Below, in pieces: positions 7,020-59,371 of a DNA stretch of 64,000 nucleotides (its first letter is position 1; every line of letters starts with the position of its first letter). The translations under genes were made by a program, and so were the position numbers. A model generated the notes under the pieces. It made no database searches. It had not been told where the DNA came from and saw nothing but the letters and a program-made list of their open reading frames with translations. Source of the DNA: Macrostomum lignano (lineage: Eukaryota); NCBI GenBank assembly GCA_002269645.1, contig NIVC01003003.1:30042-94041 (forward strand), read 5' to 3'.

Positions 7020-7688
7020 AGGGCTTATGTTGTTTGCAGTTCTTGGGCGCTCTTCCATCAGGAAGTCAGTTCTCTGACTAGAATCCTTAAATCGAATGGC
7101 TATCCGTTTGAGTTTGTTAGCCGTATTGTTATCCAGTTTATTTCTGAAAAAGTGTCCGGTGTGCAACACGGGAAAGGTTCGGAGACGGACTCTTCGGTAT
7201 CGCTGATGATTTTACCATTTCTTGGATCCGCTTCGATTGATTTTAAAAAGAAGTTAGAAAAGAGGTTTTTTAGATTGCTCAATTGCAAAATTAGAGTTGT
7301 GTTCAGGACTGAAAAGATTGCGCGCTACGCGAGCAGACTCAAATCTAGTGTTCCTCTCCCACTTAAGGCTGGTGTCGTCTATCAATTTCAATGCTCTGTT
7401 GATCAGGGTGTTTCCTATATCGGAAAAACTAAACGGCATCTGCACCAGAGGGTGAGGGAGCACTGGCTTGGGTCTTCGGCCATTAAAAACCACCTATTCG
7501 TGTGCAAGGCGTGTTGTGACTGTGAGCCTATGCAGTTGTTCAAGGTGATGGATGGATGTAACAATGATAGAAAACTAAAATTGTTGGAGGCTACGTACAT
7601 TAGGAAGTACAATCCTAGCTTAAACAATCCTAGCTTAAACGTTCAGCTTGTGAGTAAAGGTATGGAGCGACAACTCGGAATTTTTTGA
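7020..7688 (+). pseudogene. Penelope-like ORF C-terminal fragment (post-RT region plus GIY-YIG endonuclease)
   Basis: Open frame RAYVVCSSWALFHQEVSSLTRILKSNGYP...GVVYQFQCS...YIGKTKRHLHQRVREH...LEATYI..NPSLN; the RT core is absent; in-frame 15-bp duplication at 7611-7640. Confidence 0.88.
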
Positions 7689-9460: not shown

Positions 9461-10672
9461 ATTTCACAAACTGGAGTCCTGGACACTTCACAAACAGGAA
9501 AATTCACAAACTGGACACTTCACAAACTAGACACTTCACAAACTGGACACTTCACAAACAGGAAAATTCACAAACTGGACACTTCACAAACTAGACACTT
9601 CACAAACTGGACACTTCACAAACAGGAAAATTCTCAAACTGGACACTTCACAAACTGGACACTTCACAAACTAGACACTTCACAAACTGGACACTTCACA
9701 AACTGGACACTTCACAAACTAGACACTTCACAAACTGGACACTTCACAAACTGGACACTTCACAAACTGGACACTTCACAAACTAGACACTTCACAAACT
9801 GGACACTTCACAAACTGGACACTTCACAAACAGGAAAATTCACAAACTGGACTCTTCACAAACTGGACACTTCACAAACTGGACACTTCACAAACTGGAC
9901 ACTTCACAAACTGGACACTTCACAAACTGGACACTTTACAAACTGGACACTTCACAAACTGGACACTTCACAAACAGGAAAATTCTCAAACTGGACACTT
10001 CACAAACTGGACACTTCACAAACAGGAAAATTCTCAAACTGGACACTTCACAAACTGGACACTTCACAAACAGGAAAATTCTCAAACTGGACACTTCACA
10101 AACTGGACACTTCACAAACAGGAAAATTCTCAAACTGGACACTTCACAAACTGGACACTTCACAAACTGGACTCTTCACAAACTGGACACTTCACAAACT
10201 GGACACTTCACAAACTGGACTCTTCACAAACTGGACACTTCACAAACTGGACTCTTCACAAACTGGACACTTCACAAACTGGACACTTCACAAACTGGAC
10301 TTCACAAACTGGACACTTCACAAACTGGTCACTTCTTCAAACTGGACACTTCACAAACTGGACACTTCACAAACTGGACTTTCACAAACTGGACACTTCA
10401 CAAACTGGACACTTCACAAACTGGACACTTCACAAACTGGAAAATTCACAAACTGGACTCTTCACAAACTGGACACTTCACAAACTGGACACTTCACAAA
10501 CTGGACACTTCACAAACTGGACACTTCACAAACTGGACACTTCACAAACTGGACACTTTACAAACTGGACACTTCACAAACTGGACACTTCACAAACTGG
10601 ACACTTTACAAACTGGACACTTCACAAACTGGACACTTCACAAACTGGACACTTCACAAACTACAGATTTCA
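9461..10672. repeat. 16-bp minisatellite (ACTTCACAAACTGGAC), about 75 copies
   Basis: Tandem copies with CAGGAAAATT variants. Confidence 0.97.
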
Positions 10673-11427: not shown

Positions 11428-12395
11428 GTGAAGTTTGGAGATTGTGAAGTTTAGGGATTGCGAAGCTTGGGGATTGTGGATCTTGGGGATTGTGAAGATT
11501 GGAGATTGTGAAGCTAATGGATTGTGAAGCTAATGGATTGTGAAGCTAATGGATTGTGAAGCTAATGGATTGTGAAGCTAATGGATTGTGAAGCTAATGG
11601 ATTGTGAAGCTTGGAGATTGTGAAGATTGGAGATTGTGAAGCTTGGGGATTGTGAAGCTTTGGGATTGTGAAGCTTGGGGATTGTGAAGCTTGGGGATTG
11701 TGAAGCTTGGGGATTGTGAAGCTTGGGGATTGTGAAGCTTGGGGATTGTGAAGCTTGGGGATTGTGAAGCTTGGGGATTGTGAAGCTTGGGGATTGTGAA
11801 GCTTGGGGATTGTGAAGCTTGGGGATTGTGAAGCTTGGGGATTGTGAAGCTTGGGGATTGTGAAGCTTGGGGATTGTGAAGCTTGGGGATTGTGAAGCTT
11901 GGGGATTGTGAAGCTTGGGGATTGTGAAGCTTGGGGATTGTGAAGCTTGGGGATTGTGAAGCTTGGGGATTGTGAAGCTTGGGGATTGTGAAGCTTGGGG
12001 ATTGTGAAGCTTGGGGATTGTGAAGATTGGAGATTATGAAGCTTGGGGATTGTGAAGATTGGGGATTGGGAGGCTTGGAGATTGTGAAGCTTGGGGATTG
12101 TGAAGCTTGGGGATTGTGAAGCTTGGGGATTGTGAAGCTTGGGGATTGTGAAGCTTGGGGATTGTGAAGCTTGGGGATTGTGAAGCTTGGGGATTGTGAA
12201 GCTTGGGGATTGTGAAGCTTGGGGATTGTGAAGCTTGGGGATTGTGAAGATTGGGGATTGGGAGGCTTGGAGATTCTGGAGATTGGTGATTGGGAGGCTT
12301 TGGGATTGTGAAGATTGGGGATTGTGAAGCATGGATTGGGAAGTTTGGGCATTGGTGAAGTTGGATGTCAATGGGGATTGTGAAATCTGGAGAGT
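11428..12395. repeat. 16-bp minisatellite (GCTTGGGGATTGTGAA), about 60 copies
   Basis: Homogeneous core with degenerate edges. Confidence 0.97.
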
Positions 12396-12994
12396 TTGAG
12401 CCAGTTTCACAGCTGGTGACAGTCAGCTTTGCATTTCGATCTTGTAAACAATAATAATAAGCAGAAGCTTTTTCTGTCAGTGCTTACTTCTAAAAGTCAA
12501 AGCAGCAATCAGCAATTTTGTCCGTCAGGCCTCAGCCAGAATTCCAACTACAAAGGCCAATAATTACCGGTCCCAGGTACTCGTAAAAGGGGAGTTTATC
12601 AAACGTGTTTAAGTCAGACAATTTCAAGATCTGTGAAGAAATATTCTGGAAAAAGAAGGTCGACAATGCTCATAATTGCAACATAATCGCACAGTTTATT
12701 GCACCAATTATAGTCCGTAAATTTTGGTTCAGCCGGCTATAGCAAAATCTGCGACAATTATCGCCTAATCTGCAACAAAGGCACTGACGCATCCAATGCC
12801 AAATTTTCTGGCCTTGGACAATTTTCGCAAAATTACAGTAAATTACATAATGCTCCAATTATTTTGTTTGCGGCAATCAGCATCTTCTGCGGGGGATAAA
12901 TTGCTTCTATTTTGCAATTGTTCCAATCATTCTTTTCCTTAGGGGTGACGTCTAAAAGCAAGGAAAGTTGCCTTTTCAATATTGGTCAATGTCC

Positions 12995-14369: not shown

Positions 14370-14865
14370 TCCAGATCCCTTCCTTTTAGATCCCATCCTT
14401 CTAGATCCCATCCTTCTAGATCCCTTCCTTTTAGATCCCATCCTTTTAGATCCCATCCTTCTAGATCCCATCCTTTTAGATCCCATCCTTCTAGATCCCA
14501 TCCTTCTAGATCCCATCCTTTTAGATCTCATGCTTCTAGATCTCATGCTTCCAGATCCCATCCTTCCAGATCCCATCCGTCCAGATCCCATCCTTCCAGA
14601 TCCCATCCTTCCAGATCCCATCCTTTTAGATATCATGCTTCCAGATCCCATCTTTCCATATCCCATCCGTCCAGATCCCATCCTTCCAGATCCCATCCGT
14701 CTAGATCCCATGCTTTTAGATCCCATCCTTCTGTAGATCCCATCCTTTTAGATCCCATGCTTCTAGATCCCATCCTTCTAGATCCCATCCTTCCAGATCC
14801 CATCCTTCTATATCCCATTCTTCTAGATCCCATTCTTCTAGATCCCATGCATCTAGATTCCATTC
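14370..14865. repeat. 15-bp minisatellite (TTCTAGATCCCATCC)
   Basis: About 33 copies. Confidence 0.95.
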
Positions 14866-17245: not shown

Positions 17246-18048
17246 AGTGTGTGCCTATCAGCAGCTTATTTCTTTTTACTGCGAGCATCAGAATCCCTCA
17301 ATGCTAGATCTCATATCGTTTCTCTCTCCCTCTCCCTCTCTCTCTCCTCTCTCCTCTCGCCTCTCGCTCGGTCTCTCAACACTAACACTTTTTACAGATT
17401 TGAACCGCCCCGAATGTTGACTGCAACCGTTTAGGGGGTTCGAGCAGCTGAAGCGGAGCAGAAAAAATAGCGGCTCCCTCTTTCTCGGCTGGTGCATAAG
17501 AAGAAATTATTCAACCATTTCGCTCCCGGAGACTCAGTCGTCATCGTTCCCTCAATCTTACTCAACCCCCCCATCTTTCCAGCATGCCGCCCCGCTCCTC
17601 TCCTCATCCTAGCTCTCGCAGAAGAAGAAAATATTTCCATCCATCCACCCCCCTCATCCATTCCAAGGCGGAATCGTTTTAAACATTCCTTCCGTTGGGG
17701 GTTTTTTACTCTTCGGTTCGTTTCTTCCTCCCCCCGCTCCTGCGCGCGCGATGCTTTAATAAATATTTCCTGGAGGGGAAAAATCCGACTCGACTCCGCG
17801 ACACGGCGAAATCCCCAAGAGGACGCTGCCGTTGCGAGGAACAAACGGCGGAGGTGGGGAAGGAATTATTAATAAAAAGCGGTCTCGCAATCCAACGGCT
17901 TTAATTCCCTTACCGCTTCTTTCTTGCATATTTCTTGAATATTTCTTGCTTTTTGCTTCCAGTAGCAGATGCCAAGAAAGAATAAAATTAAGAGTAGGGT
18001 TTGCAAATTAAATTCTAAATAGTGTTGTGTCCTTCATTTACCCTCCAG

Positions 18049-18110
18049 TTCTGACAGAACCAAAGCAGCTCAACATCAACAGAGAAACCCCACGGGAGCT
18101 ACTCGAGAAG
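18049..18110 (+). other. Candidate upstream exon of the E-protein gene (5' UTR or N-terminal extension)
   Basis: Pyrimidine tract plus ctccag| acceptor and AAG|gtaaac donor; open and in frame with the acceptor at 18808. Confidence 0.4.
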
Positions 18111-18822
18111 GTAAACTGCAAGCAAAAATGTGCCCTAAACGGGCCGTTTTTACGTTTTCACTACTTGGAGCAGGGGACCAGATGAGAGAGTAGATGAGAG
18201 GGGAGAGAAGAGATAAGAGAGAAGCTGAGAAATGACACAAACCTTGAGCTAGCTTACTCCTGACTTAGAGAAAATTCATATTCCAATTCCGACTCATAGC
18301 GGACCCAACAAAATCGGATCGGTCATTGATTTTCCCCTCTCTCCCCCTCTCCCTCTTATCCCTCCTTTACCCTGCTCCCAAACACAAAGGAGGCCACCCA
18401 GGACTAGAAGCACGCACAAGGGGGACCCACGCAAACTTTGACAAGCATTCTGAAGCTTGGTCTGGCCCGCACACTCGCTTCTGATGATTGAGCGAACTGG
18501 CTGGAAGAAACCCTTACTGAGCTTAACTTCCCTAACCCCCAACTCCCCCCCCAACCCTCACTCATCCAGCGATCTTCCTTGTACTCAAGTTCTGCTCAGC
18601 TCTTTGTTTTACTCAAACCGAGCGCCCCCAGTGGGCCATAACACATCGTCCTTAGTAGAAGAGTAAAATAAGAGAGAGAGAGGGGAGGCCCATGAAGCTA
18701 ACATATCAGAGAACCCAACTACTTACTCGAATCCCCAAGTTAGTTGGAAGCCAACATTGCCACTCTACTAAATCTGCAGGCTATTTAAATTCAATCATTT
18801 TTTACAGGAAATCGCGTTGCAC

Positions 18823-26954: not shown

Positions 26955-29900
26955 TCAACCGGCTCTCCTCAACCCCAGAGGGAAACCAGCCAGCCACCCC
27001 CCATACAGACTTAGTAGAACTTCATTGCTTGCTTTTCCTCCCCATATCTTCTTAGAGACCTCAAACTGCTTTAATTCCTGCATTATTCTCTGCCCCGATC
27101 TCTCGTCTCTGTCTGTCTGTTTGGCTGTGTCTCCGACCCCATTCTCTATCGATAGTCAAGATAGTTTAAGCGGCACTTAGAAGCCCCCCACTCCAACACC
27201 CCGTCTCCACCTCTCCCCCCCACCAACTTCTCAAATGGAGAACCTTCGTCTCACTCAATTTTAATCCTTCCCCTCTTCCCTGGGGTCATTAATTTTTTGT
27301 CTTTGCTCTGCGAGGATATTTAAAATAAGTTTAGATTATACAATATGTATACACATGTGAGGAATCTTTGTTCTGCAAACTAAAATATAGTGTACAAAGA
27401 AAAGATTTAGAACAAAGATTTAGTATATTTAGATTCTCACCTCCCCGTGGGGTCTGTCATAAACAGGACTATTACTTTACTAGTGTTAATAATATTACCT
27501 TAGCAGTTGAAGACTTGGTTGGGGTTAGAAAAATCAGGTGCAGTGACGACACCACCCCGGTTAATGAGGCAACCAATTCTTTCTAAATACCGTTCCGCTA
27601 ATCCCCGATCCCCCGCTGAAAGTGAATTGCTGCCCACAGCCCCCCCCCCCAATTCAGCAGCCTCTTCGTGTTCCCCTGCTCTGTCTCTCTCTCTCTCTTT
27701 TTGTTATTTCTGCTCCTAGGGGCACTAATTGGCTACAGTTCCCTCTCTCCTTCTCTCCGCGCATATATATATATTTCAGGGATTTAGGATTGCAAGGTCT
27801 AGCACAGGAACGGCCCCCAACCAGTCCCGCTGACTGACCCCACCTGTTAATGGTAGGCAGGACTGTGCAGAAGCAGCAGTAGCCACGGGTTAAAGAGAAC
27901 TAATCTCCAACAAGGCTGGAAAACACCCAGCTCCCTCCCCTGCCTCGAATAAGTTAAGAAAATTGACGTCTGAAGGTCTGAAGACCAATCTTTTTTATGA
28001 ATCCTCTTCGCCCACATCCTCATTACTGAAGCGATTAGAGGGGGGGTGCGCCTCTACCCACCATATTTTTGGGTGTGAGATTTTGTGAGGGGATCGTAAC
28101 GGCGAGGCAGTGTTCGAGGTTAAGGGTTTTGTCAATCAACAGTGACACTGCTTCCAATTCTACTTTGCAGCTCTTTTCGCTAAGCAAGGATATGCAAAAT
28201 AATTGATATGCATTCGATAATCCAGGGTTTCTTTATCTAGCTAAATTAATACTTCGATTGCGACTGCTTCTCTCTGCAAACTCTGATACCTATCTCACTC
28301 TATCTCTCCTTATCTCACTCTATCTCTCCCTATCTCACTCTATCTCTCCCTATCTCACTCTATCTCTCCCTATCTCACTCTATCTCTCCCTATCTCACTC
28401 TATCTCTCCCTATCTCACTCTATCTCTCCCTATCTCACTCTATCTCTCCCTATCTCACTCTATCTCTCCCTATCTCACTCTATCTCTCCCTATCTCACTC
28501 TATCTCTCCCTATCTCACTCTATCTCTCCCTATCTCACTCTATCTCTCCCTATCTCACTCTATCTCTCCCTATCTCACTCTATCTTGTGTTTCACTCCAT
28601 CGCTTCGTCTCACTCTCCAAGTCCCTCTCCAACCCGCAGGTCTACGGCCAAGCAGACTCCGGTCCTCCATCGTACCCCGGATCCAGCTCGGCCGTTAGCA
28701 AGCTGCAGATGCAACAGCAGCACCATCATCACCACCATCAGCAGCAGCAGCATCCGCCTCCGCTGTACTCAGCCGAGTCGCATCACTACTTCGGCAGCAT
28801 GGACCATCAGCAGCAGCCGCCGCCGCCCCAGCCCGACCATTTCTATCAAAGCGACGGCGGAGGCGCCGGGGCGTTCTACTCGCACGATCCGCTTGGCGCT
28901 TTCACGGACGCTTATCAGCGCGCGTTCGGCGGCAATGGAGCTTCACCGCCGCCGCCGCCGCCGCCGCCGCCTGCGACAGGCTCAACTGGTGGCGTTAACG
29001 GCGCCGGTGGCTCGTCGCAAGCGTCAACCCCGCAGCCGGTCGGTTATTCGTCTAGCGCAGTTGAGCTGAGCGCAGTGACCGCCGGCGGCCCGGCAGTGCC
29101 GCAGCAGCAGAGAGACGGCTCATCATCGGGCGGCTCGTCTGGCTGGAGCCACTCGTTCGACGGCGCCGGCGGTGGCCATTCGGTAAGATATATAATAGAT
29201 ACCTAGATACCTAGCTAGATACCTAGCGTCTTGAGTCTCTAGATACCTAGCGTCTTGAGTCTCTAGATACCTAGCGTCTTGAGTCTCTAGATACCTAGCG
29301 TCTTGAGTCTCTAGATACCTAGCGTCTTGAGTCTCTAGATACCTTCTGTCTTGAGTCTCTAGATACCTAGTGTCTTGAGTCTCTAGATACCTAGCGTCTT
29401 GAGTCTCTGGATACCTAGCGTCTTGAGTCTCTAGATACCTAGCGTCTTGAGTCTCTAGATACTTAGCGTCTTGAGTCTCTAGATACCTTGTGTATTGAGT
29501 CTCTAGATACCTTGTGTCTTGAGTCTTTAGATACCTAGCGTCTTGAGTCTCTAGATACCTAGCGTCTTGAGTCTCTAGATACCTAGTCTCTAAAATCTCA
29601 AGTTTCTAAACATCTAGCACACCCCGAGACATCTAGCAAAATTGTTCATAGTCAGGATTTGTATAACGATTAATGTCATCAATTGATAAATCCTTGTTTC
29701 CTTTGATCGCTCCTCAGGACTCGCTCGTCGCTTTGAGACCTGACATCTACGGCTATGCGCAGCCTCATCAGATGCTGCCCTATGGAGCCAGCTCCTATCA
29801 GGTGAGACTCAACATACCCGTATACTCACTCACGAAAATATGCTAACCCGGTTCATTTAAACAGCATCATCACTACCCGTGTCCTTATCCAGCATCATCC

Positions 29901-32332
29901 CCACCCGTGTCCTTATCCAGCATCATCACCACCCGTGTCCTTATCCAGCATCATCACCACCCGTGTCCTTATCCAGCATCATCCCCACCCGTGTCCTTAT
30001 CCAGCATCATCACCACCCGTGTCCTTATCCAGCATCATCCCACCCGTGTCCTTATCCAGCATCATCCCCACCCGTTTCCTTATCCAGCATCATCACTACC
30101 CGTGTCCTTATCCAGCATCATCACTACCCGTGTCCTTATCCAGCATCATCACCACCCGTGTCCTTATCCAGCATCATCCCCACCCGTTTCCTTATCCAGC
30201 ATCATCCCCACCCGTGTCCTTATCCAGCATCATCCCACCCGTGTCCTTATCCAGCATCATCCCCACCCGTGTCCTTATCCAGCATCATCCCACCCGTGTC
30301 CTTATCCAGCATCATCCCCACCCGTTTCCTTATCCAGCATCATCCCCACCCGTGTCCTTATCCAGCATCATCACCACCCGTGTCCTTATCCAGCATCATC
30401 CCCACCCGTGTCCTTATCCAGCATCATCCCACCCGTGTCCTTATCCAGCATCATCCCCACCCGTTTCCTTATCCAGCATCATCCCCACCCGTGTCCTTAT
30501 CCAGCATCATCCCCACCCGTGTCCTTATCCAGCATCATCCCCACCCGTGTCCTTATCCAGCATCATCACCACCCGTGTCCTTATCCAGCATCATCACTAC
30601 CCGTGTCCTTATCCAGCATCATCCCCACCCGTTTCCTTATCCAGCATCATCACTACCCGTGTCCTTATCCAGCATCATCACCACCCGTGTCCTTATCCAG
30701 CATCATCCCACCCGTTTCCTTATCCAGCATCATCCCCACCCGTGTCCTTATCCAGCATCATCACCACCCGTGTCCTTATCCAGCATCATCACCACCCGTG
30801 TCCTTATCCAGCATCATCCCCACCCGTGTCCTTATCCAGCATCATCCCACCCGTGTCCTTATCCAGCATCATCCCACCCGTGTCCTTATCCAGCATCATC
30901 CCCACCACCCGTGTCCTTATCCAGCATCATCCCCACCCGTTTCCTTATCCAGCATCATCCCCACCCGTGTCCTTATCCAGCATCATCACCACCCGTGTCC
31001 TTATCCAGCATCATCCCCACCACCCGTGTCCTTATCCAGCATCATCCCCACCCGTTTCCTTATCCAGCATCATCCCCACCCGTGTCCTTATCCAGCATCA
31101 TCCCCACCCGTGTCCTTATCCAGCATCATCACCACCCGTGTCCTTATCCAGCATCATCCCCACCCGTGTCCTTATCCAGCGTCATCCCCACCCGTGTCCT
31201 TATCCAGCATCATCCCACCCGTTTCCTTATCCAGCATCATCCCCACCCGTGTCCTTATCCAGCATCATCACCACCCGTGTCCTTATCCAGCATCATCCCC
31301 ACCCGTGTCCTTATCCAGCATCATCACCACCCGTGTCCTTATCCAGCATCATCCCACCCGTTTCCTTATCCAGCATCATCCCCACCCGTGTCCTTATCCA
31401 GCATCATCACCACCCGTGTCCTTATCCAGCATCATCCCACCCGTGTCCTTATCCAGCATCATCCCCACCCGTGTCCTTATCCAGCATCATCACCACCCGT
31501 GTCCTTATCCAGCATCATCCCCACCCGTTTCCTTATCCAGCATCATCCCCACCCGTGTCCTTATCCATTTGCACGGAAGAAACTCCATCAAGACGAAAAC
31601 TGTGAACCATTTCTCCAACAAAAAATGTCAGACACAAATTCCAATTTCATTTTCTATTGTTGGCTTATGCATAAAAAAGAGTTAATTGACGGCAGGGTCA
31701 ATGCCTCAACTTGACATCCGGTACCCAGATGGTCAGCGGGTCGCTATGCCGCTATTAGGCGGAACCGAATCTTATTAGATGAGGCTGTTAGCTGGGTGGC
31801 CGAGGCAATATTTTTCTCTAAATTTTCCTGGGGATCGATTTCCATTTCTTCTTCCCATTTTCACCTAACCCTCCCGACCAGGAACCCATCCAGTTTTTCA
31901 TTTATCGAAGCCATCCATTCAAGATATCAGCGGCAGTTTTGGGGGCAGTTCGAATTCCCTATGGGAGGCTGGGCGCGAAAATAAACAAGTGCCAATTTGG
32001 ATTTCTTTCGTCATCGAGCGCGCGCGGCGGCGGGGGCAGCGGCGGTGCGGGGTGTCAAGTGGCGATGCCAGATGTCGCGCTTCAATGTCAGTCACTCCCG
32101 CTGGGCGTCACGGGCGGCGGCAGCGGGGGGGGGGCAATGGGGCCGACTGGTTTCGAATAAGATTTTTTTCCTAATTGGCCGCCTTTTCCGCATCAGCTTG
32201 CGTGGCGCGAATGTTCAGGCTCTTCAGAAATCATCAGGGAGGAAGACGGTTGCGCTTTGTGATCCCGACTTAGTTGCTAAGGCTAGGGCTTTTCTCGGCT
32301 TGTCTGTCCTGCTGTCTTTGTTTCTGTCTGGC

Positions 32333-32408
<76 letters not shown>

Positions 32409-35400
32409 AGTGCATCAGTCATTGCAGTCTCCCTATTCTAGAAAAGCCAAACAGGCATACAATAAATCTATCTTCCTCCAAATATCGTGTTGCAGCCGTC
32501 GGCCTGCGCCCCGCATTCCGGTACAAGCATGGCCCAGCATCATCAGCATCATCATCAGCAGCAGCAGCATCAGACTCTGCCGCCAGCCTCGGCTCAGCAG
32601 TCGCAGACTCGATCCTCCGCTCTGCCAGCCAAGCAGGCCAAGCTGCCCCAGTCGGCCGCCGCGATGTCGCAGGCTTCGCCGTCGGCGGCTGTTGACGAAT
32701 TCGACGGCGGCGCCGGTATCGGCGGCGTCACGGCGAAGGGCCTCGCCATGGTGCAGCAGCAGCTCCACGCCCTGTCCGGCATGGCCTCGTCCTCGTCGGA
32801 GAAAAGCGTCGGCCAGGCGGTGAAACGGCGCGGCGGGCCCAGCAGTGCGGCGACGTCGATTAGCGACGACGAGGACGACGACTTCGGGCTGAGCCCGGAG
32901 GAGAAGCAGCAGCGGGAGAAGGCCCGGCGCTATGCCAACAACGCCAGGGAGAGGTGAGCGCGACCTTTTTGTGAGCAGTTTTCGATCTGCTCAAGTTTGA
33001 GTGCGTTTTTATTTAGAACAGTTCAACAGATTTTGAGTGGATCGAATTCGCACAAGTTGATTTTCGGGTAGACTGTGAATAGGTCTGTGTAGATTGTGGG
33101 TATCTGAGTAGATCTGAGTAGATTGTGAGCAGATCTTCGGGTAGATTGTGAGTAGATCTTCGGGTAGATTGTGAGTAGATCTTCGGGTAGATTGGGAGTA
33201 GATGTTCGGATAGATTGTGAGTAGATCTTCGGGTAGATTGTGAGTAGATCTTCGGGTAGATTGGGAGTAGATGTTCGGATAGATTGTGAGTAGATCTTCG
33301 GGTAGATTGTGAGTAGATAGTCGGGTAGATTGTGAGTAGATGTTCGGGTAGATTGTGAGTAGATCTTCGGGTAGATTGGGAGTAGATAGTCGGGTAGATT
33401 GTGAGTAGATGTTCGGGTAGATTGTGAGTAGATCTTCGGGTAGATTGTGAGTAGATCTTCGGATAGATTGTGAGTAGATCTTCGGGTAGATTGTGAGTAG
33501 ATAGTCGGGTAGATTGTGAGTAGATGTTCGGGTAGATTGTGAGTAGATCTTCGGGTAGATTGGGAGTAGATGTTCGGATAGATTGTGAGTAGATCTTCGG
33601 GTAGATTGTGAGTAGATAGTCGGGTAGATTGTGAGTAGATGTTCGGGTAGATTGTGAGTAGATCTTCGGGTAGATTGTGAGTAGATCTTCGGGTAGATTG
33701 TGAGTAGATCTTCGGGTAGATTGGGAGTAGATGTTCGGATAGATTGTGAGTAGATCTTCGGGTAGATTGTGAGTAGATCTTCGGGTAGATTGTGAGTAGA
33801 TCTTCGGGTAGATTGTGAGTAGATAGTCGGGTAGATTGTGAGTAGATGTTCGGATAGATTGTGAGTAGATCTTCGGGTAGATTGTGAGTAGATAGTCGGG
33901 TAGATTGTGAGTAGATGTTCGGGTAGATTGTGAGTAGATCTTCGGGTAGATTGTGAGTAGATCTTCGGGCAAATCTTGACTAGATTGTTGAGCAGATATT
34001 GTATCAGGTGTTCATGTAGTTTGTGGATCTACCTGTGATTGGGTTTGCTAAGAGACTATTAGGCAGACCTGAATCAGAACGCTACAGAACCTCTGCCCGC
34101 TATTCCTGCGTCAAGACTCCGCGTCAAAGACATCAATGACGCCTTCAAGGAGCTCGGGCAGATGGTCGATATGCACACGGGGAACAGCCAGCCCCTGACT
34201 AAGCTGATGGTGCTGCAGCAGGCTGTAGGCATCATCACTGCCTTGGAGCAGCAAGTCAGAGGTGACCAAGCACAGCAGTGGAATTTGCAGTGTCGCATGG
34301 ACTGCGTTTGATCCCTTATCCCAGTTGCTAACCTCTGCTAACAGTGTCTAAAGCTAAGCCTGGAAGTTCCGGGTTCCTCAAAACAGGATACAATACTCGT
34401 ATTTGAATAGAATTGTCTTTTTAAAGTTGAGACTGGCCTAGTTGTAGCCAAGTTATAGCAGAAGAAAAGAATATTTTACAATCACACTGCATGCGCAATA
34501 ATAGGGGAAATATGAGCATTACAGAATTCGGGATATAATCGGTATATTTCTCAACTCCGTGAACTAATTGCCCGACAACTTCCTGGCTAGGGGGAGCAGC
34601 AGATGTTTTTTGCCCCCACGGGAAGCAAAAGTGAAAGCAGAAATCGTGCTAAAAATTGTATAAAAAATTATCCTCCCCCAATCTCCCCAAATATGAAGTC
34701 GTTCCCTCAATTTCCCGCCCGCGTCTGTGTTTGGTGCAACTTTTTTCCCTCAAACAATTGGATAAAATTATCCTCGAGAACAGGGCTTCGTGAAAATTGG
34801 AAAATTATTGGCTGCCAATTTTGTTATAATTGGGCAATTTTTGATAACACCGGCAATTTCCATGCAGGCCCAGTTTTCTTCTGAAGTAGACTCGAGGCAG
34901 CGAGGCGGGCCCAATTATAGGAAATTATCCTTTCAGCCTTTAGTAAAAATTCCTCAAAGTGCCAAGTTGCCATTGCTGCCTTTGTTAACTGCATGCCTAA
35001 CTGTCTTCTTTATGTCCTCCAATCTCAACATACTCTCTCAATCAGATCTCACTCTTTTCTCCAATCTCAGTCCAATCTCAACCTGTCCTTGTCTTTAAGT
35101 CCAATCTCACCCTTCTCTCCTCTCCCAGTCCAATCTCGCTCTCCTATACCAGTCTAATCTTATTCTCCTATCTCACTCCTCTCAGTCCGATCTCACTTTC
35201 CCATCTAAGTCTAATCTCACTCCTCTCAGTCCGATCTCACCCTTAAACTTCCATCGAATCCTATGCATGATTTTTTCTGTTAAATTCAATTGCTTGCAAT
35301 CGTTTGCCGTGTCATAAATCATCTGTCAGAGTTCGAGTTCGGGACATCAACGGAGCATTCAAGGAGCTGGGCCGTATGACCATGATGCACCTGAAAACCG

Positions 35401-38313
35401 AGAAGCCCCAGACTAAACTGGGGGTGCTTCAACAAGCTGTCACCGTGATCACCGCTCTGGAGCAGCAAGTTCGAGGTAGACGATTTTGTTACCAATATCC
35501 CGTGTGTCATTTACGATTTAAGCATGGCTATTTATAGTAGCATCGTGTGCATGCGAAAAATCCAGATCTGCTGGTTTGCTTGCGTGAAAAATTTCGGACT
35601 ATGCGTTTTACGAGTAACTACGAGCTACCGGCTACCTTTTCACAAAACCTTTTCAATGCTTTTCTATCTCTAATCTCACCCTCATTGCTTGAATCTTACA
35701 CTCGCCACTCTAATCTCAGTCTGTACACCGTCTTCGCTGTAATGTCGCCTTAATCGATCAAATATAGCCCTAGTAGCTATAATCTCACCCCATCACTCTC
35801 TAATCTCACCCTCATTGCGCTCTAATCTCACTGTCTGCTCTCTAATCTCACCCCATCACTCTCGAATCTCACCCTCTTTGCTTTCTAATCTCACTGTCTG
35901 CTCTCTAATCTCACCCCATCACTCTCTAATCTCACCCTCATTGCGCTCTAATCTCACTGTCTGCTCTCTAATCTCACCCCATCACTCTCTAATCTCACCC
36001 TCATTGCGCTCTAATCTCACTGTCTGCTCTCTAATCTCACCCCATCACTCTCAAATCTCACACTCTTTGCTTTCTAATCTCACCCTCATTGCTCTATAAT
36101 CTCACCCCATCACTCTCGAATCTCACCCTCTTTGCTTTCTAATCTCACCCTCTTTGCTTTCTAATCTCACCTTCAGCACTCTCTAATCTCACCCCATCTC
36201 TCTTATTTCTCTCTAATTGTCTTCTCTGTAATCTCGCCTTTATAAATCAAATCTCACCCTCAAAACTCTAATCTCACCCTCTCAATCAACTCTCAATCTT
36301 AACAGAGCGCAATTTGAATCCGAAAGCCGCCTGTTTGAAGCGTCGGGAAGAAGAAAAAACTGACCACATGCCGGACCGGATGTGCGGCAGCGGCGGAGGC
36401 GGCAGACTGCAGCATCCCCATCATCACAGCGGCTCCGATAACATGGGGATGGCGACCGCGGCAGCCGCAGCAGCAGCGGCGGCAGCTGCCAGCAGTCAGC
36501 TGCAGTCGGCTTCGTCGCCTGGAGTTCCGGTGTCGATGGGCATGAGTTTGTCCGGGATGCCGGCCGGGCACCATCATCACATGGCTCATTTTGGCGCGGT
36601 CGATTGTAAGGTGAGAAATCTGGGTTGGATAATAAAATAAAGCACAGTAGCATGTGATACTGTACACAGTCTGTACACAGTAGCACTGATGCTTGTACAC
36701 AGTAGCACTGATGCCTGTACACAGTAGCACTGATGCCTGTACACAGTAGCACTGATGCCTGTACACAGTCTGTACACAGTAGCACTGATGCCTGTACACA
36801 GTAGCACTGATGCCTGTACACAGTAGCACTGATGTCTGTACACAGTAGCACTGATGTCTGTACACAGTAGCACTGATGCCTGTACACAGTAGCAGTACGT
36901 CCGACTAGAACTCTGGCCTTCGGTTGGCAGCTATAAAAATACTTGAACTACTTTGCCTTTGCCTGTGTTGCAGTGGTCAATGCGAAATTCTATTGGAACT
37001 TGGTATTTCTGTAGCAAAACAAACAGCTGTCTCTAAATATGTTTTGGTGGCAGGATTTTTCATTGTTTAAATTATTCTCAGTTAATTTTACCAACATAAT
37101 AGAGATAATTGGTGCATGGAAATAATTTTTACTGAGCCTACGCAGCTACTATGGTATTGGCAATTAGCAGCGAATTACTCTGAAATGAAATTATTTTGCA
37201 CGTATTTTTCGGTATCGGATTTGACAACGGATCTACCGGATTTTTCTTCCCCTTTCTCCCTCTCTGTCTCCCTTCTCCCCTCTCTCTCCCTTCTCCCTAA
37301 TTCTCCCCCTCTCTCTCCCTTCTCCCTCTCTCTCCCTTCTCCCTCTCTCTCCCTTCTCCCTCTCTCTCCCTTCTTCCTCTCTCCCTTCTCCCTCTCTCTC
37401 CCTTCTCCCTCTCTCTCCCTTCTCCCTCTCTCTCTCCCTTCTCCCTCTCCCTCCCTTCTCTCTCTCTCTCCCTTCTCCCTCTCTCCCTTCTCCCTCTCTC
37501 CCTTCTCCCTCTCTCTCCCTTCTCCCTCTCTCTCCCTTCTCCTTCTCTCCCTTCTCCCTCTCTCTCCCTTCTCCTTCTCTCCCTTCTCCCCCTCTCCCAT
37601 CTCCCCCTCTCTCCCATCTCCCCCTCTCTCCCATCTCCCCCTCTCTCCCTTCTCCCCCTCTCTCCCTTCTCCCTCTCTTTCAATTCTCCCTCTCTCTAAA
37701 TTCTCCCTCTCTCGCAATTCTCTCCTCTCTCTATTCTCCCCACTCTCTCTCTCTCTCTCTCTCTCCTTTCCCCTTCTCTCTCCCTTCTCTCCTCCTTAAT
37801 GATGATATCCTCCTAACGAATAAAGTGCGCCCCAACTTATATTCCCAATTGGTGTTTTGAAGCAGACGACAAAAAAGCAGCCGACATTCAAACCGATTCT
37901 TCTCAATCAAAACATTTTCAGCCGCCTTCTCACTGATCGGCGGCGGCGTGGAGCAGTCGCAACCCCACCCTGGCGCTTTCTATTCCTCGGCAACGGGCTC
38001 TACGGCGGAGTCTCATCTTCTTCTTCAACAGCAGCAACAGCAACAGAAGCAGCAACAGGAGTTTATTATCTACTATGCGGCGGCAACTAATGATCAGAAT
38101 CAGCAGCAGCAGCAGCAGTTTATCTGTATTGAACCAGCAGGGCAGCAGATCAAAGCGGCTAGCGGCGGCACCAGCTTGGATGAGACAATATCGGCTGTTA
38201 TTCGCGAGAGCTACGATCCGGACGAAGGAGCGGTTGAAGAGCAGTGGCAGCGGAGGGAAGAGCATTTTTACCCGGAGCAATTTCTGCTTCCACCAGAAGA
38301 GTTGCATAGTTAG
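18823..38313 (+). CDS. da: Class I bHLH E-protein (daughterless/E2A/TCF4/HEB family), about 752 aa, with alternative HLH exons
   Basis: join(18823-19158,28640-29182,29718-29801,32496-32953,[34116-34261 or 35330-35475],36306-36605,37922-38313) = 2259 nt, GT-AG and in phase. Diagnostic motifs: [27 protein letters not shown], DINxAFKELG, [32 protein letters not shown]. The start codon and first donor (19125 vs 19158) are less certain. Confidence 0.9.
19290..20087. repeat. 41-bp minisatellite, about 19 copies
   Basis: AAAATGGCATCCTATTATCAAAAATGACACCCACCCGATTG. Confidence 0.96.
20553..20606. repeat. (CT)n microsatellite
   Basis: Seen directly. Confidence 0.95.
20865..21900. repeat. 23-bp minisatellite (AGCCAATATGGAGAGACACACTA), about 44 copies
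   Basis: Tandem copies with small indels. Confidence 0.96.
22635..22880. repeat. 20-bp minisatellite (TTACCCTTGCCAGGAGCATA)
   Basis: About 12 copies decaying rightwards. Confidence 0.92.
23745..26157. mobile_element. Foldback-like structure: inverted 16-bp minisatellite arms around a 1.2-kb core
   Basis: (GTTTAGGGATGCTGCA)n at 23745-24410 is the reverse complement of (TGCAGCATCCCTAAAC)n at 25616-26157; no TSD found, so mobility is unproven. Confidence 0.45.
25309..25569. repeat. 15-bp minisatellite (ACTGCTCCTGAACAA)
   Basis: About 17 copies inside the foldback core. Confidence 0.95.
28290..28584. repeat. 20-bp minisatellite (TATCTCACTCTATCTCTCCC)
   Basis: About 14 near-identical copies ending about 55 nt before an acceptor. 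Confidence 0.96.
29197..29587. repeat. 24-bp minisatellite (TAGATACCTAGCGTCTTGAGTCTC)
   Basis: About 16 copies. Confidence 0.95.
29862..31566. repeat. 27/28-bp minisatellite (CCGTGTCCTTATCCAGCATCATCCCCAC), about 60 copies
   Basis: Stop-free in all three + frames, which explains the three overlapping long ORFs; intronic. Confidence 0.97.
32322..32408. repeat. (GTCT)n microsatellite
   Basis: Seen directly. Confidence 0.93.
33075..33970. repeat. 23-bp minisatellite (TCTTCGGGTAGATTGTGAGTAGA), about 38 copies
   Basis: Lies in the intron preceding HLH exon A. Confidence 0.96.
34116..34261 (+). CDS. da: E-protein HLH exon A ([48 protein letters not shown])
   Basis: Acceptor tcaag|A, donor G|gtgacc; 146 nt, phase 2 in, phase 1 out; no stop. 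Confidence 0.9.
35330..35475 (+). CDS. da: E-protein HLH exon B ([48 protein letters not shown])
   Basis: Acceptor gtcag|A, donor G|gtagac; 146 nt, phase 2 in, phase 1 out; closer to the E-protein consensus than exon A. Confidence 0.92.
35780..36290. repeat. Degenerate CTAATCTCACCC-based array
   Basis: Lies in the intron following HLH exon B and runs up to the acceptor at 36305. Confidence 0.88.
36655..36895. repeat. 22-bp minisatellite (GTACACAGTAGCACTGATGCCT)
   Basis: About 11 copies. Confidence 0.93.
37245..37797. repeat. CT-rich low-complexity array
   Basis: CCCTTCTCCCTCTCT units. Confidence 0.93.
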
Positions 38314-56945: not shown

Positions 56946-57464
56946 ACAAATGAAGATCACATAAGGGTCACAAAGCCAATTAGTCTTTATGCGCTGGTAT
57001 TCCTATGGAATTCCTAAATCAGCTGTAGTCCCCTATATAGAGGATTAAATGCCCGAATCCGAATAAGGTAAGATAATCTATTTGAGCACTGATATAGAAT
57101 TACCACCTTCGCGCTAATAGCATTACACCGCAGAGCATCCTTTAGCAGAAATTGCTGGGATTAGGCCGATATCCAATTCCTGTTTATTTATGCAGCACGG
57201 CTGCAAGCCTACAAGCCAATCTGTACGGATGTCTTCTGTATAGATGGCTAGTGTAGAGAACAGAGTGCTTAGATTTAGCCTTAGGGCTATTGCCATGGCT
57301 ATTGCCAAGTGTTTAGGTAAATATTAATCAATGGGTGAGAAAGATGATCATATTCTCAGGTGGACACTGTTCTTAAGGTCAGGTGACAGACCCGCTTCGA
57401 AGGCATCGAGGGGGTGCTGTCATCGAGGGGTGCTGTCATCGATAAGAGCGAAAGCTACAGGAGA

Positions 57465-58375
57465 GATCGAGATGAAGAGACCGAGAGAGGAGATGGAGAG
57501 ACCGAGAGAGTTGGAGAGACCGAGAGAGGAGATAGAGAGACCGAGAGAGGAGATGGAGAGACCGAGAGAGTTGGAGAGACCGAGAGAGGAGATAGAGAGA
57601 CCGAGAGAGGAGATGGAGAGACCGAGAGAGTTGGAGAGACCGAGAGAGGAGATGGAGAGACCGAGAGAGGAGATGGAGAGACCGAGAGAAGAGATGGAGA
57701 GACCGAGAGAGGAGATGGAGAGACCGAGAGAAGAGATGGAGAGACCGAGAGAGGAGATGGAGAGACCGAGAGAAGAGATGGAGAGACCGAGAGAGGAGAG
57801 GGAGAGACAGAGAGGGGAGATGGAGAGTCCGAGAGAGATGGAGAGACCGAGAGAGGAGATGGAGAGACCGAGAGAGGAGATGGAGAGACCGAGAGTGGAG
57901 AGGGAGAGACTGAGAGAGGAGATAAAGAGTACGAGAGAGATGGAGAGACCCAGAGAGTAGATGGAGAGACCCAGAGAGTACATGGAGAGACCCAGCGAGT
58001 AGATGGAGAGACCCAGAGAGTAGATGGAGAGACCCAGAGAGTAGATGGAGAGACCCAGAGAGTAGATGGAGAGACCCAGCGAGTAGATGGAGAGACCCAG
58101 CGAGTAGATGGAGAGACCCAGAGAGTAGATGGAGAGACCCAGAGAGTAGATGGAGAGACCCAGAGAGTAGATGGAGAGACCCAGAGAGTAGATGGAGAGA
58201 CCCAGAGAGTAGATGGAGAGACCCAGAGAGTAGATGGAGAGACCTAGCGAGTAGATGGAGAGACCCAGAGAGTAGATGGAGAGACCCAGAGAGTAGATGG
58301 AGAGACCGAGAGAGGAGATGAAGAGACCGAGAGAGGAGATGGAGAAACCGATAGAGAGGCGATGGAGAGACGAGG
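57465..58375. repeat. GA-rich 21-bp arrays (GAGAGACCGAGAGAGGAGATG then GAGAGACCCAGAGAGTAGATG)
   Basis: Seen directly; explains the E/R-rich ORFs. Confidence 0.95.
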
Positions 58376-59371
58376 ACAGAGGTAGGAGAAGCAGGGGAGA
58401 AGAACTGTGGAAAGGAGTGAGAGGGAGACACAGAAAGAGAGGAATCCAAAGTAGACAGAGATAAGAATCAGAGAAGTGAAGGCTTGAACTGGTGATTTAT
58501 TTACAGTCAAACACCGAACTCATAGGTAAGTAATAATGTTGTAAATTCAGCGCATTGCATCTATAATGGGCATCTATCATAGTGAATTATAACCGACCAT
58601 TCTGTCTGACTGGAACTGGACGGCCGGAGTCATAGAACTCAGTGGGTGGTTCTTACGTCTTAGAAATAGCCTCACTTATGTCGTATAGATAACGGCACAA
58701 GTAGAGCCGCTCACCTGCGAAAATAATAATTTCTTATCTTTTCGACTTCCCTTACTAGAGTTTACTGCAATTTTGAGCTGCCAGAGGCCCCCTCCGCCTC
58801 GAAAATCGACTCAATATTGAACACGGGGTTCAGCGGACTTTTGTTGACTGTCTGTGTAGTAGTTAGTGTATGCCATGGGCTCCTTCTGTTCCACCAAGTC
58901 TCTCGTAATGGCATGAGCCGCCCCTTCATATCAATACAATATCACTGAGGCTTTCCAGTGGTGGGGATAAGGGTAATAAAAAAGCTGTTTTGCAACTCCC
59001 AAAGCAGATGGCCAATATTTGCACCTGGGGTTGAGTGAATTGGGGTGGGGCCCGTCTTCTTTCTGTCTCAATTTTACGTAGTTCAGGAAAACAAGAAACA
59101 CGTGGAATAGGTGTCCTTTAGCACCAACAGTTCGTTGTTCTTGTAGGCTCGTAGCTAATAGCCTGTCCTATTCCTATGTTATTTTTGTTATTCTTCATTA
59201 CTTTAAATTTATCGAATATGCCTAAATTATAGGATGTTTTGAAGTAGAATCCGCTTTAATCCATCTTAATAACGTTATGATCATGAATCCCGATAAATTC
59301 TGGAACTCTATAATCCCAGGATTTTGAATCCTGATACATCCTGCAACTCTGTGATCCTGGGATTTTGAATC

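Follow-up and report, generated by a model that had tools for sequence, protein, structure and literature searches.

The window, a stretch of 64,000 nucleotides of the Macrostomum lignano genome (contig NIVC01003003.1), holds a bHLH (basic helix-loop-helix) gene of class I, that is, an E-protein gene orthologous to daughterless and TCF3/4/12, in which a common exon is followed by two tandem HLH exons, A and B, and a common last coding exon (Table 1). The products of both exons match Pfam PF00010 HLH above the cut-off of 20.7 bits (isoform A 46.1 bits, isoform B 39.5 bits), the top PDB matches are E2A (2.9e-33) and TCF4, with TAL1 reaching merely 9e-4, and the database matches are all TCF3/4/12 or da-like. 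The sequence shows the basic region of class I (RR.ANNARER.RVRDIN) and, after helix 2, the extension specific to class I, the latter being the same motif as in nearly all E-proteins retrieved. The Pfam domain, the class I motifs and the best structures bear out the proposal of an earlier note on this DNA that it contains an invertebrate E-protein gene.

The common exon runs from the acceptor ttgcag/CCG at 32496 to the donor AG/gtgagc at 32953 (slashes mark splice junctions) and closes with RRYANNARE and two bases of a split Arg codon (CGC TAT GCC AAC AAC GCC AGG GAG AG/gtgagc). Exons A and B each encode the bHLH from the last part of the basic region through helix 1 and the loop to helix 2, and the last coding exon adds the class I-specific helix 2 extension, a low-complexity tail and a conserved C-terminal KVRNL motif, the motif of this exon being common to all E-proteins retrieved. 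The anatomy of the exon pair given in the earlier note was confirmed base for base, in coordinates, length (146 nt), canonical ag and gt sites and identical phases. Relaxed tblastn over the whole window found no HLH exon besides A and B, and no second basic-region exon was found in it. Low complexity rich in Q, H, P and G is typical of E-protein linker regions and characterizes the probable upstream exon, of which positions 28919-29177 match UniProt A0A1I8JQI8 at 95-100%. For AD1 (LDFS motif) and AD2 (..DDAIHVLR.H..), both present in Owenia and mollusc orthologues, regular expressions and short tblastn gave no convincing match in the window; the N-terminal exons of the gene may lie outside it or have diverged.

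The best-scoring entries are four M. lignano UniProt entries, all imperfect gene models; the protein searches gave no further transcript-derived protein of the species. M. lignano UniProt models match the common exon, and the four use exon A in one case, exon B in two and a fusion of A and B in one (A0A1I8JSA8). The last belongs to a second genomic copy, in which exon A is unchanged and exon B has one substitution. M. lignano also has a second E-protein gene (L007) with a single B-like HLH exon.

Table 1 Features of the E-protein gene in the window and the HLH exon pairs found in other spiralians
Source	Feature	Position	Strand	Details
M. lignano, window	Probable upstream coding exon, same gene	28650..29177 (approximate boundaries)	+	Open frame 28250-29203
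M. lignano, window	Common exon	32496..32953	+	Ser/Ala-rich linker, acidic stretch, basic region to RRYANNARE plus AG of split Arg codon
M. lignano, window	Intron 1	32954..34115	+	1162 nt
M. lignano, window	Exon A, A-type HLH exon	34116..34261	+	146 nt; phase 2 in, 1 out; ag acceptor, gt donor
M. lignano, window	Intron A-B (intron 2)	34262..35329	+	1068 nt
M. lignano, window	Exon B, B-type (canonical da/TCF4-like) HLH exon	35330..35475	+	146 nt; phase 2 in, 1 out; ag acceptor, gt donor
M. lignano, window	Intron 3	35476..36305	+	830 nt
M. lignano, window	Common last coding exon	36306..36641	+	Stop codon ends at 36641
Paragonimus westermani (L008)	Exon A	17697-17842		146 nt; ag/gt
Paragonimus westermani (L008)	Exon B	18100-18245		146 nt; ag/gt
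Heterobilharzia americana (L005)	Exon A, then exon B			A as assembled 145 nt (1-nt deletion in T run); B 146 nt; ag/gt
Capitella teleta (L003)	Exon A	10293-10438		146 nt; ag/gt
Capitella teleta (L003)	Third exon			152 nt
Capitella teleta (L003)	Exon B	11549-11694		146 nt; ag/gt
Helobdella robusta (L004)	Exon A	12065-12210		146 nt; ag/gt
Helobdella robusta (L004)	Exon B	14417-14562		146 nt; ag/gt

Exons A and B are identical at 33 of 48 full codons (35/50 with the split codons) and at 99 of 146 nucleotides (69% of amino acids, 68% of bases), a likeness far beyond chance. The shared residues with differing third codon positions reported earlier were recovered: 16 of the 33 codons that agree in amino acid differ in DNA. 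Between the exons dS is 1.38 (saturated) and dN 0.28, and the dN/dS check proposed in the earlier note gives 0.20, not near 1. An assembly artefact was rejected because A and B differ at 47/146 bases and the layout recurs in five other genomes. At their 3' ends, A and B of M. lignano have ITALEQQVR in common, and those of Capitella ITGLE.

Since 146 nt is 2 mod 3, having both exons in, or both out, shifts the frame. If A and B are spliced in together, the frame runs into a stop codon within exon B, 96 nt upstream of the last junction between coding exons, and such a transcript would probably undergo nonsense-mediated decay; if both are skipped, a stop follows after 9 codons. The frame logic for mutual exclusivity therefore holds, the length of each exon implying one HLH exon per mRNA, and we infer that A and B are used mutually exclusively in M. 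lignano itself and that the choice between them is regulated.

Three means of enforcing the choice were considered and rejected. Steric exclusion fails because the A-B intron is far too long, and a U2/U12 clash because all sites are U2-type GT-AG. RNA structure was considered with the intron repeats: a 23-nt unit (TGAGTAGATCTTCGGGTAGATTG), repeated in tandem about 38 times at 33105-33969, makes up most of intron 1, the A-B intron has CT-rich CCAATCTCA repeats at 35033-35240, and intron 3 has a 63-nt CT-rich tandem array (TAATCTCACCC..., 35780-36194). The GT-rich 23-mer array is able to pair with the CT-rich arrays of introns 2 and 3. Pairing of intron 1 with intron 2 was no better than in dinucleotide shuffles (-129.5 versus -133 +/- 6 kcal/mol), and pairing with intron 3 was better (-171 versus -141 +/- 8 kcal/mol in shuffles). 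Control of exon choice by such structure was dismissed as compositional, because unrelated arrays elsewhere in the window pair equally well per base and comparable arrays are absent from the other species with the exon pair.

Conservation of the exon pair

The layout of common ANNARE exon, A-type exon, B-type exon and ERNLNPK exon, with the same intron positions, was found in two trematodes (Paragonimus and Heterobilharzia) and two annelids (Capitella and Helobdella), in each with the A signature upstream and the B signature downstream, as in the window. The A-type signature is a non-basic residue 16, a non-acidic residue 25, Gln 26, Leu/Met 28 and Met 32, and the upstream exon reads QP[LM]T[KR]LM where the downstream, B-type exon reads KPQTKL; the canonical B-type signature is R/K16, D/E25 and K/R26. 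Window exon A fits the former signature and exon B the latter.

In Owenia fusiformis the annotated isoforms CAH1789442 (A) and CAH1789446 (B) have an identical upstream exon; CAH1789446 is a partial record that stops within exon B and covers the junction into B, that out of B lying beyond its end. Spliced A-only and B-only transcripts are present in various annelids. In gastropods, bivalves and a chiton the A-type is the only HLH exon used, and one mollusc-like contig has two A-type exons. Because the same pair is found in trematodes and annelids, and the A-type alone in molluscs, the duplication would predate the split of flatworms, annelids and molluscs.

Absence of the A-type outside Spiralia is a statement about annotated proteins, among which it is restricted to Mollusca, Annelida and Platyhelminthes. 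The B-type alone was seen in Priapulus, arthropods, echinoderms, a hemichordate, a tunicate, vertebrates and Trichoplax; these include RefSeq isoform sets annotated in depth, those of the hemichordate Ptychodera (15 isoform sequences) and of Antedon (6).

A neighbour-joining tree of 29 exon peptides (49 residues) recovered an A-type clade with a bootstrap of 766/1000. Window exon A groups with the A-type exons of trematodes, annelids and molluscs, and exon B with B-type exons and non-spiralian E-proteins. A support of 77% from 49 residues would not by itself be decisive, but A and B also differ in four alignment columns with disjoint residue sets, and exon A of M. lignano has a mean identity of 74% to other A-type exons and exon B of 75% to B-type exons. 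Sister pairing of A and B was seen in 0/1000 bootstraps for M. lignano and 2/1000 for Capitella. We regard it as extremely unlikely that the pair arose by independent duplications in each phylum, with convergent A-type residues and a lineage-specific pair in Macrostomum. Tandem exon duplication is frequent in the E-protein gene (the third exon of Capitella, the contig with two A-type exons, E12/E47), and the ITALEQQVR of M. lignano and ITGLE of Capitella could reflect exchange between copies. However, the order of A upstream of B in five genomes of two phyla, the four diagnostic columns, the absence of sister pairing and the saturated dS all argue for a single, old duplication.

Selection was gauged between Paragonimus and Heterobilharzia, which differ by 24 synonymous and 3 non-synonymous changes in exon A (pS 0.77, pN 0.027) and by 18.5 and 3.5 in exon B (pS 0.60, pN 0.031). 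Both exons are under strong purifying selection. The low fluke pN and the dN/dS of 0.20 agree with the earlier suggestion of an old duplication with both copies constrained. They bear as well on the idea that one exon is a silent relic in M. lignano, with A or B constitutive and the other copy undecayed. Exon B of the window could be redundant with the single B-like exon of the second E-protein gene, and B can be lost, as molluscs show. Yet the frames of both exons are open, their splice sites canonical and their length exactly the ancestral one, each keeps about three-quarters identity to its own type, the A0A1I8JSA8 copy has left A untouched and B nearly so, and trematode pN is about 0.03 for both at saturated pS; a relic is, in our judgement, quite unlikely.

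What sets the A and B proteins apart lies in the last part of helix 1, the loop and the first part of helix 2, and A-type and B-type differ at positions equivalent to E47 R571, D580, K581, Q583 and L587. In the A-type, the polar network of E47-like domains formed by R571, D580, K581 and Q583 is replaced by neutral or hydrophobic residues, and Met is fixed at 587. The dimer hydrogen-bond residues H576-E600 are kept. So are R556, R558, N563 and K585, which contact DNA in E47 (review PMC8283981, the source for all residue roles used here), in both exons, as the earlier note had said of the DNA-contacting residues. Judged from the E47 structures as reviewed, exchange of A for B would be expected to affect dimerisation and partner choice.

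Comparison with known systems

The vertebrate E12/E47 pair (TCF3/E2A exons 18a/18b) is, to our knowledge, the sole E-protein example of an alternative bHLH in the textbooks. It resembles the window pair in being of the same family, with tandem homologous HLH exons, isoforms differing solely in the bHLH and a like 3' boundary and phase (QQVR/E RNLNPK). The 5' boundary differs. The vertebrate exons begin upstream of RERR(V/M)ANNARER and include the acidic segment together with the entire basic region (..RERRVANNARER.. vs ..RERRMANNARER..), whereas M. lignano keeps both in the common exon and its alternative part begins at the Arg after ANNARE. The earlier note was therefore right that the split is unlike that of E12/E47, with the swap here confined to the part that starts at the Arg of ANNARE-R; of the intron positions it asked to have compared, ANNARE/R also occurs in insects. 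Neither the exon span nor the grouping of the exons with E12 and E47 favours orthology of the two pairs: E12 and E47 are both B-type (columns 16, 25, 26 and 32) and outside the A-type clade, so that neither is an exon A orthologue. Moreover, of three vertebrate paralogues only one has the vertebrate pair, whereas the spiralian pair spans phyla. Of the earlier claim of an independently evolved switch, independence from the vertebrate pair stands; it is not specific to the lineage of M. lignano, since two trematodes and two annelids have the same pair.

A pair older than Spiralia, ancestral to bilaterians, with A lost in Ecdysozoa and Deuterostomia and E12/E47 as its remnant or re-creation, would fit the presence of the ANNARE/R and QQVR/E introns in insects (exon-only open reading frames). 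Against it, every named non-spiralian E-protein retrieved is B-type only, including the Ptychodera and Antedon isoforms, E12 and E47 both have R16, D/E25, K26, Q28 and a residue other than Met at 32, and their exons also include the basic region. We consider such an origin very improbable and place the duplication within the spiralian lineage.

We know of no alternative dimerisation module for Drosophila daughterless or C. elegans HLH-2, which are orthologous single protostome E-protein genes, with the ANNARE/R intron in insects, but have one HLH exon, of the B-type only. Mollusc and Owenia E-protein genes share this intron and an exon duplication that varies one half of the bHLH, but as a mirror image, with a duplicated basic-region exon (..RRQANNDRE, ..RRQANNNRE, ..RRQTNNQRE) and a constant HLH exon, whereas there is just one basic-region exon in Macrostomum, trematodes, Capitella and Helobdella. 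These alternative or cassette basic-region exons were seen in database isoforms, and we found no description of them in the literature; full-text searches likewise turned up no account of an HLH exon switch in an invertebrate E-protein. The E12/E47 exons are spliced mutually exclusively under the control of hnRNP H1/F and PTBP1 (PMC6795145, PMC6120717), and the account of Sun and Baltimore 1991 given in PMC8283981 attributes their DNA-binding difference to the region adjoining the basic region, whereas the A/B difference of M. lignano lies in helix 1, loop and helix 2. In vertebrate COE/EBF, as far as the description in PMC2394523 extends, an HLH-helix exon of a metazoan transcription factor is likewise tandemly duplicated, but the duplicate is included obligatorily rather than alternatively, and the family is another.

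Discussion

Taken together, the M. lignano E-protein gene most probably has ancient tandem HLH exons that are spliced mutually exclusively and give two dimerisation variants. An intron right after ANNARE splits the bHLH coding sequence, and the next exon is present in two tandem copies. Their duplication before flatworms, annelids and molluscs diverged would have yielded a derived A-type in the upstream copy and a canonical B-type in the downstream one, both kept in Macrostomum, trematodes and annelids, and A alone in gastropods, bivalves and chitons. With one copy taken per mRNA, two proteins would share activation regions, base-contacting basic region and C-terminal extension, and the outcome would likely be two hub subunits with unlike affinities in homodimers, for class II partners and for Id/emc.

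E-proteins serve as the shared partner of class II bHLH factors, proneural and myogenic ones included, and are what Id/emc inhibitors act on, and an altered E-protein dimerisation surface would alter the whole bHLH network. As far as sequence comparison can tell, spiralians have had two E-protein versions for hundreds of millions of years. The spiralian switch would be older than E12/E47 and cut differently, with the HLH alone swapped, and flies, nematodes and vertebrates lack an equivalent of its A-type. It also carries a warning, given that the locus is misrepresented by bHLH gene counts from domain matches and in several public gene models, UniProt A0A1I8JSA8 being an example.

On balance, we favour the view that the spiralian A-type HLH is a second, phylum-spanning dimerisation version, a regulated switch in flatworms and annelids and the sole version in most molluscs, and that, together with the basic-region exons of molluscs and Owenia, the ANNARE/R intron divides the bHLH of this universal class I partner into a DNA-binding module and a dimerisation module that can be swapped independently of each other. 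For partner choice, the switch would offer a concrete entry point that can be tested, both in models rich in stem cells (Macrostomum, planarian relatives and schistosomes) and in the neurogenesis of annelids and molluscs. If that view is true, Spiralia would have a class I/class II/Id dimer network wired unlike the fly and vertebrate models.

Results

Reading window positions 32700-36500 and translating them in the correct phase, together with the splice sites, confirmed the tandem pair of 146-nt helix-loop-helix (HLH) exons that the earlier note had described as probably mutually exclusive. Exons A (upstream) and B (downstream, canonical) share 99 of 146 bases and encode the same amino acid in 33 of 48 full codons, 16 of which differ in DNA. 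The proteins of both isoforms pass Pfam HLH. A relaxed tblastn found neither a third HLH exon nor a second basic-region exon in the 64-kb window. Because the nearest solved structures are human E2A and TCF4 and the homologues are all TCF3/4/12- or daughterless-like, the sequence is assigned to a class I bHLH (E-protein) gene. AD1 and AD2 motifs were not found within the window, so that the gene model is provisional in its N-terminal part.

The top database matches are four UniProt entries from the free-living flatworm Macrostomum lignano, all of them imperfect gene models. Exon A appears in the model A0A1I8JQI8 and exon B in A0A1I8IPN2 and A0A1I8FLQ4; A0A1I8JSA8 (P0001) joins A and B in frame via non-canonical boundaries. 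The genomic copy behind this last entry differs slightly, both in the length of its poly-Q and by a G-to-S change; there A is unchanged and B carries one substitution. Fused two-HLH models of this kind also occur for E12/E47 in several vertebrate annotations, among them bird and fish models with both alternative HLH exons (P0004, P0006, P0356, P0002). A second M. lignano E-protein gene (PAA53471.1) has the same intron positions, lacks the A exon and carries a single B-like HLH exon with 84% protein identity to window exon B (dS 0.85).

Positions of the features in the window and in fetched genomic loci (own coordinates)
Feature	Sequence	Position	Strand	Remarks
Common exon, end	window	32953	+	AG of split Arg codon, then gtgagc
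Exon A	window	34116-34261	+	146 nt; ag before, gt after
Exon B	window	35330-35475	+	146 nt; ag before, gt after
Last coding exon	window	36306 (start), 36641 (end of stop codon)	+	begins within (E) split codon
Tandem arrays near or within HLH introns	window	33105-33969, 35033-35240, 35780-36194, 36671-36894, 37254-37500
Further tandem arrays (examples among many)	window	29879-31714, 11562-12410, 57331-58449
ORF, 178 aa	window	7152-7688	+
M. lignano PAA53471.1 gene	L007 (NIVC01003083.1)	11882-12990		HLH exon 12383-12528
Capitella teleta (annelid), A-type	L003	10293-10438		after ANNARE exon
C. teleta, third exon	L003	11141-11292		152 nt
C. teleta, B-type	L003	11549-11694		before ERNLNPK exon
Helobdella robusta (leech), A-type	L004	12065-12210
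H. robusta, B-type	L004	14417-14562
H. robusta, HLH-like stretch	L004	14800-14949		3' of B
Paragonimus westermani (fluke), A-type	L008	17697-17842
P. westermani, B-type	L008	18100-18245
Heterobilharzia americana (schistosomatid), gap in A	L005 (OX104127.1)	~10803		A then B, same order
Elysia crispata, extra basic-region exons	L001	12358-12438, 14686-14769
Tandem A-type exons, mollusc-like genome	L006 (ENA ERZ25069866)	10081-10226, 10274-10419		47-nt intron

The reading in the earlier note could imply a newly evolved pair specific to Macrostomum, which it is not. By tblastn placement and subsequent checking of splice sites, A-type and B-type exons were found in two annelid and two fluke loci, with A upstream of B in every one and the intact exons 146 nt long (one 152) with ag/gt sites. 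The A-type signature carried by exon A, ELG-Q/H/S-M-V/I ... QP-L/M-T-K/R-LM, is also present in mollusc proteins; exon B resembles daughterless and TCF4 (ELGRM...KPQTKL). In Owenia fusiformis, an early-branching annelid, annotated isoforms CAH1789442, 43 and 44 of one gene use A and CAH1789446 uses B after an identical upstream exon; the latter is a partial record that stops within exon B and hence shows the junction into B and not the one out. Only the A-type exon was found in the Lottia gigantea and Elysia loci, and all annotated gastropod, bivalve and chiton proteins retrieved are A-type. In the assembled Heterobilharzia A exon, a run of T is one base short (GCTTTAAAG in place of GCTTTTAAAG), and the frame shifts as a result. 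An assembly error is likelier than decay here, given that the rest of the exon, although saturated with synonymous changes, encodes protein 94% identical to that of the intact Paragonimus copy and that both exons are under strong purifying selection.

Further HLH or HLH-like sequences occur in some loci. The third Capitella exon, between A and B, is intact, with ag/gt sites, a loop extended by two residues (..LHSGMSPEKPLTKLN..) and mixed A/B character. The divergent third stretch in Helobdella has no clean splice sites that we could see, and in the mollusc-like L006 the 47-nt intron may make splicing from one A-type exon to the other sterically impossible.

When 29 exon peptides were joined into a neighbour-joining tree (1000 bootstraps), the A-type exons formed a clade in 766 replicates; Mlig A and Mlig B (the window's exons) are sisters in none, and Capitella A and B in two. 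Residue sets are disjoint in four alignment columns: 16 (B-type R/K, A-type Q/H/S/T), 25 (D/E, neutral), 26 (K/R, Q) and 32 (varied, M). Against the other A exons Mlig A has a mean identity of 74%, against B-type exons one of 63%; for Mlig B the two values are 67% and 75%. B-type states characterize human E12, E47, TCF4 and TCF12, Priapulus, insects, spiders and Trichoplax. Named non-spiralians whose isoforms are deeply annotated, among them Ptychodera (15 isoform sequences), Antedon (6), Diadema, Clavelina, Varroa and Amphibalanus, have no HLH other than a single B-type one, and the same holds for a bryozoan and the cephalopod Argonauta. On the simplest reading of these sequences, the duplication predates the flatworm-annelid-mollusc split, exon A being derived and exon B having disappeared from several classes of molluscs. 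Some ecdysozoan models have odd or doubled HLH segments: Hyalella azteca (P0011) and Darwinula stevensoni (P0376) lack ERNLNPK after an HLH, and in the protein of the tardigrade Hypsibius exemplaris (P0357) the bHLH with its extension is present twice in full. Annotation errors may explain such cases, or else additional duplications of exons or genes.

Between Paragonimus and Heterobilharzia, exon A has 24 synonymous and 3 non-synonymous differences (pS 0.77, pN 0.027) and exon B 18.5 and 3.5 (pS 0.60, pN 0.031). Between Mlig and Paragonimus, pN is 0.14-0.16 for both exons with pS saturated, and between Mlig A and Mlig B dS is 1.38 and dN/dS 0.20. These values bear out the proposed purifying selection, which is strong on both exons.

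The suggestion that the switch swaps the dimerisation module and keeps the DNA-contacting residues also fits (exon position p = E47 residue 555+p). According to a review of its structures, E47 contacts DNA through R548, N551, N552, E555, R556, R558, N563 and K585, and H576-E600 form an inter-subunit hydrogen bond (PMC8283981). Of these contacts the common exon encodes the first four, and A and B agree at R556, R558, N563, K585, H576 and E600. A-type exons replace R571, D580, K581 and Q583 and fix Met at 587. In E47, G570-Q583, Q574-K581 and Q583-Q591 connect helix 1, the loop and helix 2 of one monomer in a network, and E568, salt-bridged to R571, also contacts ID1 R99 (PMC8283981). As a candidate mechanism, A-type proteins would lose this polar network and the Id-facing salt bridge.

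Since 146 = 2 mod 3, inclusion of both exons and skipping of both break the reading frame; the length class is conserved in all species examined. With both exons included, a stop arises 96 nt before the last coding junction, and such transcripts would be likely targets of nonsense-mediated decay; with both skipped, translation stops after 9 codons. As to how joint splicing would be avoided, the A-B intron of 1068 nt rules out steric hindrance, and splice sites that are all GT-AG rule out a U2/U12 clash. Pairing of intron arrays was also rejected: those of introns 1 and 3 are partly complementary in composition, yet pair no better than unrelated arrays, and the compact loci of other species lack such long arrays. 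In TCF3, hnRNP H1/F bind to silencers within the exon, and PTBP1 to an element in the intron (PMC6795145); by analogy, trans-acting regulators are expected to set the A/B choice.

Strand-asymmetric tandem arrays saturate the window and also lie in each of the three introns next to the HLH exons; most of the long ORFs are merely conceptual translations of these repeats. The 178-aa ORF contains a motif (..VVYQFQC...YIGKTKRHLHQRVREH..) that resembles a GIY-YIG nuclease core, as in Penelope-like retroelements.

Discussion

The closest known case, vertebrate E12/E47, shares the gene family, tandem HLH exons and the 3' boundary. However, vertebrate exons bring their own acidic and basic segments, a difference in layout that the earlier note had recognized; neither is A-type, and the pair is confined to one vertebrate paralogue. 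The putative splice switch is independent of the vertebrate pair, as proposed, but its exon pair is ancient and common across Spiralia rather than newly evolved. The ANNARE|R intron, also present in insects, makes an HLH-only swap possible.

In bivalves (P0257, P0263, P0265, P0269), the chiton Liolophura (P0372, P0479-P0487), Elysia and Owenia (P0374) we see the converse of the putative switch in Macrostomum: the same HLH exon receives alternative basic regions (..RRQANNDRE, ..RRQANNNRE, ..RRQTNNQRE) from extra exons between the ANNARE and HLH exons, included or skipped in annotated isoforms. The bHLH of the spiralian E-protein therefore behaves as a pair of modules, each of which can be duplicated independently of the other. 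Published surveys of bHLH genes in lophotrochozoans list one E12/E47 gene in Capitella and two each in Helobdella and Lingula, with no mention of exons or splicing (PMC5381572, PMC1828162); speculatively, the counts of two (PMC5381572, Table 1) might be tandem HLH exons of one gene. The literature searched contained no description of an HLH exon switch in an invertebrate E-protein. An invention confined to one lineage would have been more startling, but the pair has the broader scope, and it is of interest for work on flatworm stem cells, on bHLH networks and on the evo-devo of spiralians.
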